This document shows positions 10,001 through 16,000 of a stretch of DNA of 64,000 bases, piece after piece. The notes beneath the pieces were generated by a model. That model was not told the origin of the DNA. It ran no database searches and saw nothing but the letters and a program-made list of their open reading frames with translations. The DNA comes from Macrostomum lignano (lineage: Eukaryota), in contig NIVC01000922.1 in NCBI GenBank assembly GCA_002269645.1, positions 269,716 to 333,715 of the forward strand, read 5' to 3'. The position numbers and the translations under genes were made by a program. Each line of letters opens with the position of its first letter. The first letter of the stretch is position 1.

Positions 10001-13000
10001 ATGAGGATGTAGAGTAAGAGATGAGGGTGTAGAGTGAGAGATGAGGATGTAGAGTTTGAGAGATGAGGATGTAGAAGGTGAGAGATGAGGATGTAGAGAG
10101 GGTGAGAGATAAGGATGTAGATGATGAGAGATAAGGATGTAGATGGTGAGAGATAAGGATGTTGAGGGTGAGAGATAAAGGATGTTGAGGGTGAGAGATA
10201 AAGGATGTAGAGAGGGTGAGAGATAAGGATGTAGATGATGAGAGATAAAGATGTAGAGGGTGAGAGATAAGGATGTTGAGGGTGAGAGATAAAGGATGTA
10301 GAGAGGGTGATAGATAAGCATGTAGAGGGTGAGAGATAAAGGATGTAGATGGTGATAGATAAGCATGTAGAGGGTGAGAGATAAAGGATGTAGATGGTGA
10401 TAGATAAGGATGTAGAGAGGGTGAGAGATAAGGATGTAGATGGTGATAGATAAGGATGTAGAGAGGGTGAGAGATAAGGATGTAGATGGTGATAGATAAG
10501 GATGTAGAGAGGGTGAGAGATAAGGATGTAGATGGTGAGAGATAAGGATGTAGATGGTGAGAGATAAGCATGTAGAGGGTGAGAGATAAGGATGTAGAGA
10601 GGGTGAGAGATAAGGATGTAGATGGTGAGAGATAAGGATGTAGATGGTGAGAGATAAGCATGTAGAGGGTGAGAGATAAGGATGTAGAGAGGGTGAGAGA
10701 TAAGGATGTAGATGGTGAGAGATAAGGATGTAGATGGTGAGAGATAAGCATGTAGAGGGTGAGAGATAAGGATGTAGAGAGGGTGAGAGATAAGGATGTA
10801 GATGGTGAGAGATCAGCATGTAGAGGGTGAGAGATAAGCATGTAGAGGGAGAGAGGTAAGGATTGAAGAGGATCCAGAATTTCGGAAAATAATAGTTAAG
10901 GATGAACTACCATTTGGCACGTTTCTCCTAGATTTATAGTTTCTCAACGATTATGTATCGAAATATCGGTAAAGTTATTTCCCGTCTAGCCTATGGCATC
11001 AGTTCTCCAATCGCAGAACAGTAAGATGCTGGCTCAGAAACTGCCTCTCCATCTGCTCTATATAGAGAGTCAGTGACCAGTTAGCCCTAGACTGGCAAAG
11101 CCATGGAATCCAAGCAGTCTTGGCGTCGTTCGCTTCAACGGTTTGCCTCATTAAGCGTCACATCTCCATCGCTGTGGCGACGGCAGCGTCAGCTTAAGCC
11201 AGACGCCGATGCTCACCTCGATGCCCAATCCGATGGGCAGCCGTTGAAGCGCAGGCGCAACGGTCTCGCCTACCTGCGCCTGATCGGCCTGTCGAGAGTG
11301 CCGTCTCTGCAGACGGCTGCGTCGTTGCGAAAGAATTGCGAAGCCACCAAAGCATCGGAGTGGTCATTATTGAATAAAAGTGAAAATCATATTGCACTAA
11401 TTTGCAGCGTGCCAGCATTCAAAGAGCTGCCAGGAGAAACTCTCAGCAAACTGGCTGACGTACTCGAGGCCGATCACTATCCCAATGGCGAGTACATTAT
11501 CCGGCAGGGCGCCAAGGGCAACACGTTCTACATCATCGCCAAGGGCAACGTGCGGGTGACCAAGCGCGATTCGGCTACCGGGGAGAGCGTCTTCATCAGG
11601 AATATGGGCCGCGGCGACTGGTTCGGCGAGAAGGCGCTTAACGAGTGAGTGCTCTCAGTGTTTTACGGTCTGTTTTTAGCTATGCTTGCTCACTCCTGTG
11701 CGGCTAAATCAGGGATCAGTAAAGAGAAAGGAGAAAGCAGATAAGGTGAGGGAATAAAGCAGAAGACAGGAGAGGGATAAAATTGATGAAGGGAGAGGAG
11801 AAAGGAGAAAGGAGAAAGGAGTGGAGAAGAAAGGAAAGGAGAGGAGAGGAGAAGAGAGAGAGAGAGAGAGAGAGAGAGAGAGAGAGAGCCTCCAATCCCG
11901 AAGGCGCTGACACAGCAAAGCAACAAGACAAAAAAGCTAGGAAGTGTTAGTTGCCGATATTTCGAATACGAAATTCTTCGTCAGGGCAAAATGAATATAA
12001 TTCATTTAATGAATATAATGAATATAATTCTATAATTCCTGATATAATTATTAAGGTGAGAAACTGACAAATAAAAATAACAGAAAAGTAGGGGAAAAGA
12101 AGAAAGGAGAGGAGAGGAGAGGAGAGGAGAGAGAGGAAAGGAGAGCAGAGGAGAATGGAGGAGAGGAGAGGGGAGAGAGGAAAGGAGAAGAGAGAGGAAA
12201 GGAGAGGAGAGAAGAGAGAAGAGAAGAGAGGAGACGAGAGAGAAGATGAGAGGAGGGAAGGGAGGAGATGAGAGAGGAAAGGAGAGGAGAGAAGAGAGAA
12301 GAGAGAGTAAAAGAGAGCAGAGAAGAGAGGAGAGAAGAGAGGAGACGAGAGAAAAAAGCTGAGAAGAGACAAGCCTTGAGCGGGCCGGATTGCTATTGGG
12401 AAGTTTCAAAGGACCCGAGGGCTTCGCGGGCCGGAGTTGGCCGACCCCAAGACTAAATTGTACATCCGCACTTCAGAGAGGACGTGCGCACAGCCAACAT
12501 CATTGTTGAAGACCCTAACGGAGTGGACTGTCTCGTTCTCAATAGAGAGTAAGTTCTGAGCATTAACTCTTCTGCCCTGCTATCTGTCTGACTAATTGTT
12601 TAAATCAATCATCTTATTGGAGCCTATTCTAAGCTTATGTTTATTAACTTGCAAAGTAATCATTATTTCAGCAATCTTACCCAGCACGAGTAAGCAAATT
12701 TGTTGCTTCGGTAATTTTAGAGTGGGTTTTCTTTTTAAAAAAATAACAAACCATTCTCACAGCATTGGGATTTGCGCTCTAAAAACTGGCTCTAAAAATG
12801 AGTTGCTTTTATCGGGGCTAATATCTGCTAATATTTATAGTGTGAAAATAATTTATTTAATAATTTGCTTTCTGTCTTTTCGTAATCTATACTGTTTGTG
12901 ATAATGTCTGCTTTCTTAAGAAAATAAATTAAATTAACCTCTCCATTAACCCTCAATAAAAATCCGCATTCACCCTACCAGGTCTTACAAACAGCTCATA

Positions 13001-16000
13001 GGGGATCTGGCCATTCTGGGCAGGAAGTACTCAGACGAGAGCACTGCACAGCCTTCGTGAGTTTTGCTGAGATTTTCGTGGCCTTTTTTTTAAATCGAAG
13101 GTTATTTTTTCAGAAATGGAATAACAGATTTTTTTTGAAAATGCATATTCAATGACAGTCGATCTGAAGAATTCAAGGGTTTAACGCTGAAGGACCTGTT
13201 CATCATTGCCACTCTTGGAGTTGGCGGCTTCGGTCGCGTCGAGCTTGTGAGTCGCTTTGTTATTACCTGTGAGCTTCAGGTGTGTGTCTGAATACAGATT
13301 CAGGTGTGTGACTGAATACAGATTCAGGTGTGTGACTGAATACAGATTCAGGTGTGTGACTGAATACAGATTCAGGTGTGTGACTGAATACAGATTCAGG
13401 TGTGTGCGTGACTAAATACAGATTCAGGTGTATGACTGAATACAGATTCAGGTGTGTGACTGAATACAGATTCAGGTGTGTGACTGAATACAGATTCAGG
13501 TGTGGGACTAAATACAGATTCAGGTGTGTGACTGAATACAGATTCAGGTGTGTGACTGAATACAGATTCAGGTGTGTGTCTGAATACAGATTCAGGTGTG
13601 TGTCTGAATACAGATTCAGGTGTGTGCGTGACTAAATACAGATTCAGGTGTGTGACTGAATACAGATTCAGGTGTGTGACTGAATACAGATTCAGGTGTG
13701 TGACTGAATACAGATTAAGGTGTGGGACTAAATACAGATTCAGGTGTGTGACTGAATACAGATTCAGGTGTGTGACTGAATACAGATTCAGGTGTGTGAC
13801 TGAATACAGATTCAGGTGTGTGACTGAATACAGATTCAGGTGTGTGTCTGAATACAGATTCAGGTGTGTGACTGAATACAGATTCAGGTGTGTGACTGAA
13901 TACAGATTCAGGTGTGTGACTGAATACAGATTCAGGTGTGTGACTGAATACAGATTCAGGTGTGTGACTAAATACAGATTCAGGTGTGTGACTGAATACA
14001 GATTAAGGTGTGGGACTAAATACAGATTCAGGTGTGTGACTGAATACAGATTTAGGTGTGTGACTGAATACAGATTAAGGTGTGGGACTAAATACAGATT
14101 CAGGTGTGTGACTGAATACAGATTCAGGTGTGTGACTGAATACAGATTCAGGTGTGGGACTAAATACAGATTCAGGTGTGTGACTGAATACAGATTCAGG
14201 TGTGTGTCTGAATACAGATTCAGGTGTGTGACTGAATACAGATTCAGGTGTGTGTCTGAATACAGATTCAGGTGTGTGCGTGACTAAATACAGATTCAGG
14301 TGTGTGACTGAATACAGATTCAGGTGTGTGACTGAATACAGATTCAGGTGTGTGACTGAATACAGATTCAGGTGTGGGACTAAATACAGATTCAGGTGTG
14401 TGACTGAATACAGATTCAGGTGTGTGACTGAATACAGATTCAGGTGTGTGTCTGAATACAGATTCAGGTGTGTGACTGAATACAGATTCAGGTGTGTGTC
14501 TGAATACAGATTCAGGTGTGTGCGTGACTAAATACAGATTCAGGTGTGTGACTGAATACAGATTCAGGTGTGTGACTGAATACAGATTCAGGTGTGTGAC
14601 TGAATACAGATTAAGGTGTGGGACTAAATACAGATTCAGGTGTGTGACTGAATACAGATTCAGGTGTGTGACTGAATACAGATTCAGGTGTGTGACTGAA
14701 TACAGATTCAGGTGTGTGACTGAATACAGATTCAGGTGTGTGACTGAATACAGATTCAGGTGTGTGTCTGAATACAGATTCAGGTGTGTGACTGAATACA
14801 GATTCAGGTGTGTGTCTGAATACAGATTCAGGTGTGTGACTGAATACAGATTCAGGTGTGTGTCTGAATACAGATTCAGGTGTGTGACTGAATACAGATT
14901 CAGGTGTGTGACTGAATACAGATTCAGGTGCGTGACTGAATACAGATTCAGGTGTGTGACTGAATACAGATTCAGGTGTGTGACTGAATACAGATTCAGG
15001 TGCGTGACTGAATACAGATTCAGGTGTGTGACTGAATACAGATTCAGGTGTGTGACTGAATACAGATTCAGGTGTGTGACTGAATACAGATTCAGGTGCG
15101 TGACTGAATACAGATTCAGGTGTGTGACTGAATACAGATTCAGGTGTGTGACTGAATACAGATTCAGGTGTGTGACTGAATTCTCTGAACTATGCGATTT
15201 AGTGTATCTGAATCGCGTCTTTTTTGTGCTAGTTTTTGTGCGAACCGCACCACCTGAAGTTTCTGAAGTAGCGTCCTTTATTTGGCTGGCAATCACCGAC
15301 TCAATCGCCGCTCCAAGGTTCGAATCCGCAACGACAACAGCCGCAGTTTCGCTCTGAAGCAGCTCAAGAAGCATCACATTGTTGAGACCCGACAGCAGGA
15401 GCACATCATGAATGAGCGAAGCATTCTGGCCGAGGCCAACTGCGATTTCATTGTCAAGTGAGTGTCTATAGGCCCGCGAAGCCTCTCAATCCAGCCCTCG
15501 GGTCCTTTGAAACTTTGCGATAGCAATCCGGCCCGCTCAAGGCTTGTCTCTTCTCAGCTCTCTTCTCTTTCGCCTCTTCTCTCTCCCCGTTTCTCCTCTT
15601 CGCTCTCTCTCCTCTCTCCTCATCTTTCTCTCCTCTCTCCTCATCTTTCTCTCCTCTCTCTCCTCTTCTCTCTCTCTCTCTCTCTCTCTCTCTCTCTCTC
15701 TCTCTCTCTCTCTCTCTCTCTCTCTCTCTCTCTCTCTCTCTCTCTCTCTCTCTCTCTCTCTCTCTCTCCACTCTGATTTCCTTTCCATGTTTCAAATATT
15801 AAAACACGCTAATAACCGCATCGTGTTTAATATCGTGTATTGCAGGCTCTACCGAACATTCAAAGATCGGAAGTATCTGTACATGCTGATGGAGTCCTGC
15901 CTTGGCGGCGAGCTGTGGACCATCCTGAGAGACAAGTGAGGCTGTTCAATGAATTTTTATTCTACTTGAGACTAAAAAAATCGCTGCCTTAAAATAAACC

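Follow-up and report, generated by a model that had tools for sequence, protein, structure and literature searches.

Circularization of RNA by inverted repeats is described for the Alu pairs of human ZKSCAN1 and HIPK3, for Drosophila laccase2, and for Caenorhabditis elegans zip-2. In miniature introns, the splice sites and an inverted repeat of 30–40 nt suffice for circularization (Liang and Wilusz, PMC4201285), and in C. elegans reverse-complementary matches promote not only the back-splicing of exons but also the skipping of those exons (Cao, PMC8330042). An earlier note on a 64-kb stretch of Macrostomum lignano DNA (assembly GCA_002269645.1, Mlig_3_7; contig NIVC01000922.1), here called the window, had pointed to inverted copies of one element around exons 5–8 of a cGMP-dependent protein kinase (PKG) gene and had named flanking inverted repeats as drivers of back-splicing and exon skipping, for which these two papers supply the precedent. 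The PKG locus shares with the known systems a multi-exon block, near canonical splice sites, with complementary sequences in the directly flanking introns. Its 375-nt size is typical of such circles, and pairing would favor skipping as well (PMC4201285, PMC8330042). It differs from them in being known from DNA alone and in its predicted duplex, which is far longer (~290 bp) and mostly GA:CU. The introns that flank circular RNA (circRNA) loci in Drosophila and human are typically long, whereas those of the PKG block are very short. Unlike Alu, the M. lignano sequence is not known as an abundant family, two copies having been seen. A literature search returned nothing useful on Macrostomum or other flatworm circRNAs, or on PRKG1 circRNAs.

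The host gene is BOX15_Mlig003256g1, in locus L004, where position 22848 is window position 12001. Twelve GT-AG exons on the plus strand, from 1027 to 18235, splice into an open frame of 581 residues closed by a stop codon. The product is 100% identical over its full length to the annotated M. lignano protein PAA74802.1 (707 aa), and the N-terminal PKG exons lie upstream of the window, so that exons 5–8 are the fifth to eighth exons within it. Pfam assigned cNMP_binding and Pkinase domains to the product, and a fragment of it aligned to human PKG I beta (7lv3) with E = 1e-76. Tandem cNMP-binding domains followed by an AGC kinase domain, together with close identity to known PKGs, identify the gene as a PKG. 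It was compared with two gene copies of the same 90%-identity protein cluster, on contigs NIVC01000163.1 (L005) and NIVC01000923.1 (L006), with the paralogs L002 (85% protein identity) and L003 (82%), and with the ortholog of the trematode Calicophoron daubneyi.

The inverted repeat around exons 5–8 is real and far above chance. A repeat scan found arms of 76 nt at 12348-12423 and 15493-15568 that are 93% complementary, and blastn within the window gave the pair E = 1.5e-28. Past a 13-nt indel by which the two heads differ, another 13 nt (GGCCCGCGAAGCC) match. Just two occurrences of a 21-nt head core were counted in the 64 kb, where 0.00 would be expected from shuffled sequence. Head 1 ends 44 nt ahead of the exon 5 acceptor and head 2 begins 13 nt past the exon 8 donor, measured values for spacings that the earlier note had put at about 40 and 12 nt. 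The intron directly upstream of the block and the one directly downstream thus contain reverse-complementary sequences.

Each head, read in its own orientation, is followed by a CT-rich microsatellite-like tail. Heads and GA/CT tails together are similar over 304 nt at 80% (12135-12423 versus 15493-15786), which bears out the proposal that the tails extend the pairing. The extent first given for copy 1 fell short for its tail: a GA tract farther upstream belongs to copy 1 too and has been cut off from it by a 212-nt insertion. This tract is the distal tail and not a third copy, because L006, which does not have the insertion, runs unbroken there. A third, degraded head beside the tract was considered and rejected, its score being barely above shuffled sequence and due to GA repeats only. 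The 212-nt insertion is AT-rich, and no other copy of it was found in the window, L002, L003, or L006. The coordinates are collected in Table 1.

Table 1. Features of the PKG exon 4 to exon 9 region, in window positions. A slash marks an exon border.
Feature	Position	Strand	Comment
PKG exon 4	11408-11644	+	ends in phase 2 (..AAC GA/); spliced model identical to PAA74802.1
Copy 1 tail, distal part	11724-11888	-	GA-rich on the plus strand; continuous with the proximal tail in L006
Later insertion, 212 nt	11889-12100	.	interrupts the copy 1 tail; carried by the window and L005, not by L006
Copy 1 tail, proximal part	12101-12347	-	GA-rich on the plus strand, purine-rich in the pre-mRNA
Copy 1 head, 85 nt	12348-12432	-	without 13 nt kept in L006 copy 1 and in every copy 2 head
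Intron 4, last 44 nt	12433-12476	+	branch-point-like actaaat (by eye), acceptor cacttcag
PKG exon 5, 72 nt	12477-12548	+	end of second cNMP-binding domain
PKG exon 6, 75 nt	12982-13056	+	linker
PKG exon 7, 88 nt	13159-13246	+	glycine-rich loop GVGGFGRV
PKG exon 8, 140 nt	15318-15457	+	catalytic Lys (FALKQLKK), alpha-C helix Glu, sole in-frame ATG
Intron 8, first 13 nt	15458-15470	+	donor gtgagtgtctata
Copy 2 head, 98 nt	15471-15568	+	matches copy 1 head
Copy 2 tail	15569-15786	+	CT-rich, (CT)n run at its end, pyrimidine-rich in the pre-mRNA
PKG exon 9	15846-15935	+	begins in phase 2 (G CTC TAC..)

The ability of the two arms to pair in the pre-mRNA was assessed by folding, and the figures are thermodynamic predictions rather than a record of folding in vivo. 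The duplex of the two heads was computed at -164.6 kcal/mol compared to -52.6 ± 5.2 kcal/mol for shuffled sequences (n = 200), and G-U pairs make up only 2 of its 81 base pairs. The full arms reached -457 kcal/mol, and cofolding introns 4 and 8 gained 430 kcal/mol over folding them separately. The minimum-free-energy fold of the 5,266-nt pre-mRNA from exon 4 to exon 10, a check that the earlier note had proposed, joins intron 4 to intron 8 by 290 bp, with 287 of the 321 positions of copy 2 paired with intron 4. No competing inverted partner was found within intron 4 or intron 8. These data predict that a long intron 4-intron 8 duplex forms.

The reading frames claimed for the enclosed block were reproduced. 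Exons 5–8 sum to 375 nt, all are bounded by AG and GT, and both borders of the block are in phase 2. The annotated mRNA uses both the acceptor (cacttcag/A) and the donor (AA/gtgagt) at these borders. A transcript with exon 4 spliced to exon 9 would stay in frame (...GEKALNE/LYRTFKD...) and, as judged from the Pfam and 7lv3 alignments, would lose the last part of the second cNMP-binding domain (CNB-B), the glycine loop, and the catalytic Lys. A circle of exons 5–8 is stop-free in the coding frame and contains one in-frame ATG, again as the note had stated. Inside the block that would be looped out, a 24-nt minisatellite of ~79 copies (13275-15181) fills most of intron 7.

We propose that two homologous sequences inserted in opposite orientations into introns 4 and 8 of one young M. 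lignano PKG lineage. Each consists of a unique head of ~85–100 nt and a long CT-rich microsatellite-like tail, and the pair would stem either from a low-copy element that re-inserted locally or from a local inverted duplication. Once transcribed, the purine-rich arm of intron 4 would pair with the pyrimidine-rich arm of intron 8 to form the ~290-bp duplex and loop out exons 5–8. This would bring together the exon 8 donor and the exon 5 acceptor, and likewise the exon 4 donor and the exon 9 acceptor. The outcome would be back-splicing of some transcripts into a 375-nt four-exon circle, in-frame loss of 125 codons from some by skipping, or both. With its repeats next to the splice sites, the locus matches the geometry of the known mechanism, so some circle and/or skip is expected, most likely as low-level by-products beside the normal mRNA. 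What the DNA shows directly is the anatomy of the sequence, its pairing potential, the reading frames, the age of the pair, and a lack of detectable constraint on it; the duplex in vivo and any circular or skipped RNA are what we infer from the arrangement. As a whole, the account of young neutral inverted insertions, a duplex, and minor circle or skip products is in our judgment probable.

Comparison of the gene copies dates the arrangement. Both heads are at the same sites in L005 and L006, and the three gene copies have ~94% or more DNA identity. The possibility of an assembly artefact is excluded by the presence of the pair on three contigs with differences among them. L002, L003, and the C. 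daubneyi ortholog share all five intron positions in and around the block, and in the trematode gene the block likewise spans 125 codons. Neither the heads nor an inverted repeat between introns 4 and 8 is present in these three genes. The sharing of intron positions by loci without heads indicates that the introns are ancient and the insertions recent, and the same block in a trematode indicates that its phase symmetry is ancestral. Copy 1 of L006 keeps the 13 nt that are absent from copy 1 of the window, which identifies the gap as a later deletion. No compensatory changes between the arms were found among the heads of the window, L005, and L006; the differences are independent single changes. 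The heads of the window and L006 differ at 11 of 187 positions (5.9%) and the neighboring intron pieces by 4-11%, a comparison with the neutral rate that is only rough because the three gene copies are mosaic. These sequence comparisons give no sign of selection for pairing and point to an arrangement that is recent, neutral, and unconstrained.

The mosaic character of the copies was evident in their alignments. Window positions 12477-13246 and L006 positions 15092-15859, which run from exon 5 to exon 7 and include introns 5 and 6 (~770 nt), are 100% identical, while their flanks differ by 4-11%. The window and L005 exhibit the reverse pattern, with identical heads, intron 5 at 92%, and intron 9 at 89%. 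The pattern suggests gene conversion or recombination among the copies, or a mosaic assembly. The L006 copy is also annotated with a different N-terminal region of ~100 residues (P0243, 686 aa, compared to P0123, 707 aa). This difference recalls vertebrate PKG I alpha and beta, which have alternative first exons.

The term "one element" held in that the two copies are homologous, but not in the sense of a mobile family. Blastn and locus searches found no third copy of the head in ~134 kb of independent M. lignano DNA, made up of the 64-kb window, 10.8 kb upstream of it, L002 (19.6 kb), and L003 (43 kb). The head family is not very abundant, with the qualification that a scope of this size excludes only very high abundance. 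A head-like 12-mer in intron 8 of L003 was discarded after it failed a motif search allowing 3 mismatches. The exact 24-nt core of the head had 0 matches in metagenome and prokaryote genome collections, and a 35-aa translation of the head, searched in the antisense frame, matched just two spurious tandem-repeat open reading frames (ORFs) among 1.84 billion representative proteins.

A sharp 5' head boundary (GGCCCGCG...), a microsatellite-like tail, and opposite copies that differ by an indel resemble short interspersed nuclear elements (SINEs) or miniature inverted-repeat transposable elements (MITEs) with simple-repeat tails. Unlike these elements, the copies have no third relative in the ~134 kb, and their structural hallmarks were not found. 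The heads gave no Rfam match (E up to 5) and no tRNA in ARAGORN, that is, nothing like an RNA polymerase III or tRNA-derived head, and only weak chance matches arose in the 24-nt minisatellite. No terminal inverted repeats were seen in the copies, and no target-site duplication was recognized by eye in the flanks, where the low-complexity tail ends make the check weak. Their status as a transposable element is therefore unproven. Intron 8 is almost wholly inserted sequence, which is a property of introners. An introner origin was rejected since introns 4 and 8 predate the element and occupy the same codon positions in the element-free L002, L003, and C. daubneyi genes. One oddity left over is that the sole two copies seen are 3 kb apart, inverted, and in the same gene; a local origin would explain their closeness.

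Besides the mosaic state of the gene copies, several points weigh against the proposed account or lessen the surprise of the locus. With only two copies, transposition and segmental or local inverted duplication are indistinguishable. Without the inserts, intron 4 would measure ~123 nt (79 + 44) and intron 8 ~72 nt (13 + 59); intron 8 of L002 is 80 nt, and inserted sequence accounts for 316 of the 388 nt of the window's intron 8. Introns so small at the outset leave a tolerated insertion no place farther than a few tens of nucleotides from a splice site, and the tight bracketing is therefore largely automatic: its closeness was described correctly, and its noteworthiness was not. The same applies to the phase-symmetric module, whose frames are right and whose distinctiveness is not, with 23 of the 55 internal exon blocks of the PKG gene (42%) having a length that is a multiple of 3 and with the block's symmetry being ancestral. 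The DNA examined has roughly one inverted pair with E < 1e-8 for every 27 kb. The annotated proteins of all three gene copies retain exons 5–8, and P0243 differs only at its N terminus. Two thirds of the predicted duplex is low-complexity GA:CU, not every inverted repeat circularizes, and low-complexity stretches or over-stable hairpins can inhibit the reaction (PMC4201285).

Several of these points also fit a locus in which the repeats have no splicing effect and only linear mRNA is made. Short introns spliced during transcription, or proteins on the 200-nt CU tract, could prevent pairing. The arms are 3 kb apart including the 1.9-kb minisatellite, which leaves time to splice intron 4 before intron 8 is transcribed, and only full-length proteins are annotated. 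This reading must be set against a very stable duplex that dominates the predicted fold, and against the measurable effects of matches of 13-40 nt in the systems tested so far (PMC4201285, PMC8330042); we regard it as possible but rather doubtful. The same duplex, long and nearly perfect with its few G-U pairs in the heads, might instead be diced or edited as double-stranded RNA of ~300 bp, lowering the expression of this PKG copy or silencing other copies of the element. No sequence feature singles out this fate, and we rate it very improbable.

Selection could also have made the arrangement a regulatory device that yields a functional circRNA, possibly translated through its stop-free frame, or a dominant-negative, kinase-dead PKG that keeps the N-terminal dimerization region and most of the cGMP-binding domains. 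The geometry is like that of minimal cassettes sufficient for circularization (PMC4201285), the predicted pairing is strong, the circle has its single ATG and the skip stays in frame. All three close gene copies have retained the pair, but this says little in copies so alike in DNA overall. The pair is absent from the older paralogs and from the trematode ortholog with the same exon block, compensatory substitutions were not seen, a 13-nt deletion has been tolerated in one arm, the heads diverge at the pace of nearby introns, and phase symmetry is both common in this gene and old. These data make a selected device improbable. Its strongest form is a working switch with an abundant 375-nt circRNA, read from the single ATG in an endless frame round and round, and/or a dominant-negative kinase-dead PKG, in which the three gene copies, one keeping the 13 nt of head 1, would differ in output; we consider this highly unlikely. 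The proposed account of recent, neutral insertions with minor splicing by-products remains the one we prefer. On the present evidence, the locus is what a repeat-rich genome ordinarily yields when sequence is inserted into tiny introns.

The head of copy 2 also contains a strong acceptor-like motif (ttgtctcttctcag/c, 15545-15558) 100 nt into intron 8. No AG was noticed by eye between ~15558 and the true acceptor at 15845, and the intron could conceivably have a cryptic acceptor or distant branch points.

Repeats are plentiful elsewhere in the window. Nearly every PKG intron (window 1-19900) and many other sites have their own unrelated minisatellite, with periods of 18-60 nt and up to 80 copies, and the array lengths vary among the three gene copies. 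Simple and tandem repeats account for 15% of the M. lignano genome (PMC5730564), and the window's minisatellites are in line with this figure. A 26-nt minisatellite (TGTGTCAGTGTGGAGCCATGCTTCAC) forms two inverted arrays of ~500 nt (16559-17125 and 19433-19898; 72-73% identical) that flank the stop codon (~18233) together with the two final PKG exons; the second array is past the coding sequence and may be in the 3' untranslated region or farther downstream. Another inverted repeat, 54969-55111 and 55591-55733, has 143-nt arms that are 94% identical and ~480 nt apart, and is possibly a small terminal-inverted-repeat element. In L002, a 313-nt inverted repeat (3913-4225 and 5794-6106, 99% identical) is located within a large intron of BOX15_Mlig009136g2 and brackets no exon; the pair resembles an element of ~2.2 kb with long terminal inverted repeats. 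Other genes are apparently present on the plus strand of the window at 21844-25796, 42079-42444, and 59691-62834. Inspection by eye of this strand noted long ORFs rich in Gln and Ala, of which one has an ETS-like stretch, and an ORF resembling the N-terminal part of a seven-transmembrane receptor. Weak tblastn matches suggest a second protein-kinase-like gene in the window.

PKG genes have behavioral roles in other animals, and given these roles a kinase-dead PKG isoform, if made, would be of some interest. M. lignano transgenesis exists (PMC5730564), which leaves the circle and skip prediction open to deletion constructs. If the RNAs are made, the locus would be a compact natural flatworm circRNA cassette: both flanking introns are <1 kb, and the heads approach the splice sites to within 44 and 13 nt.

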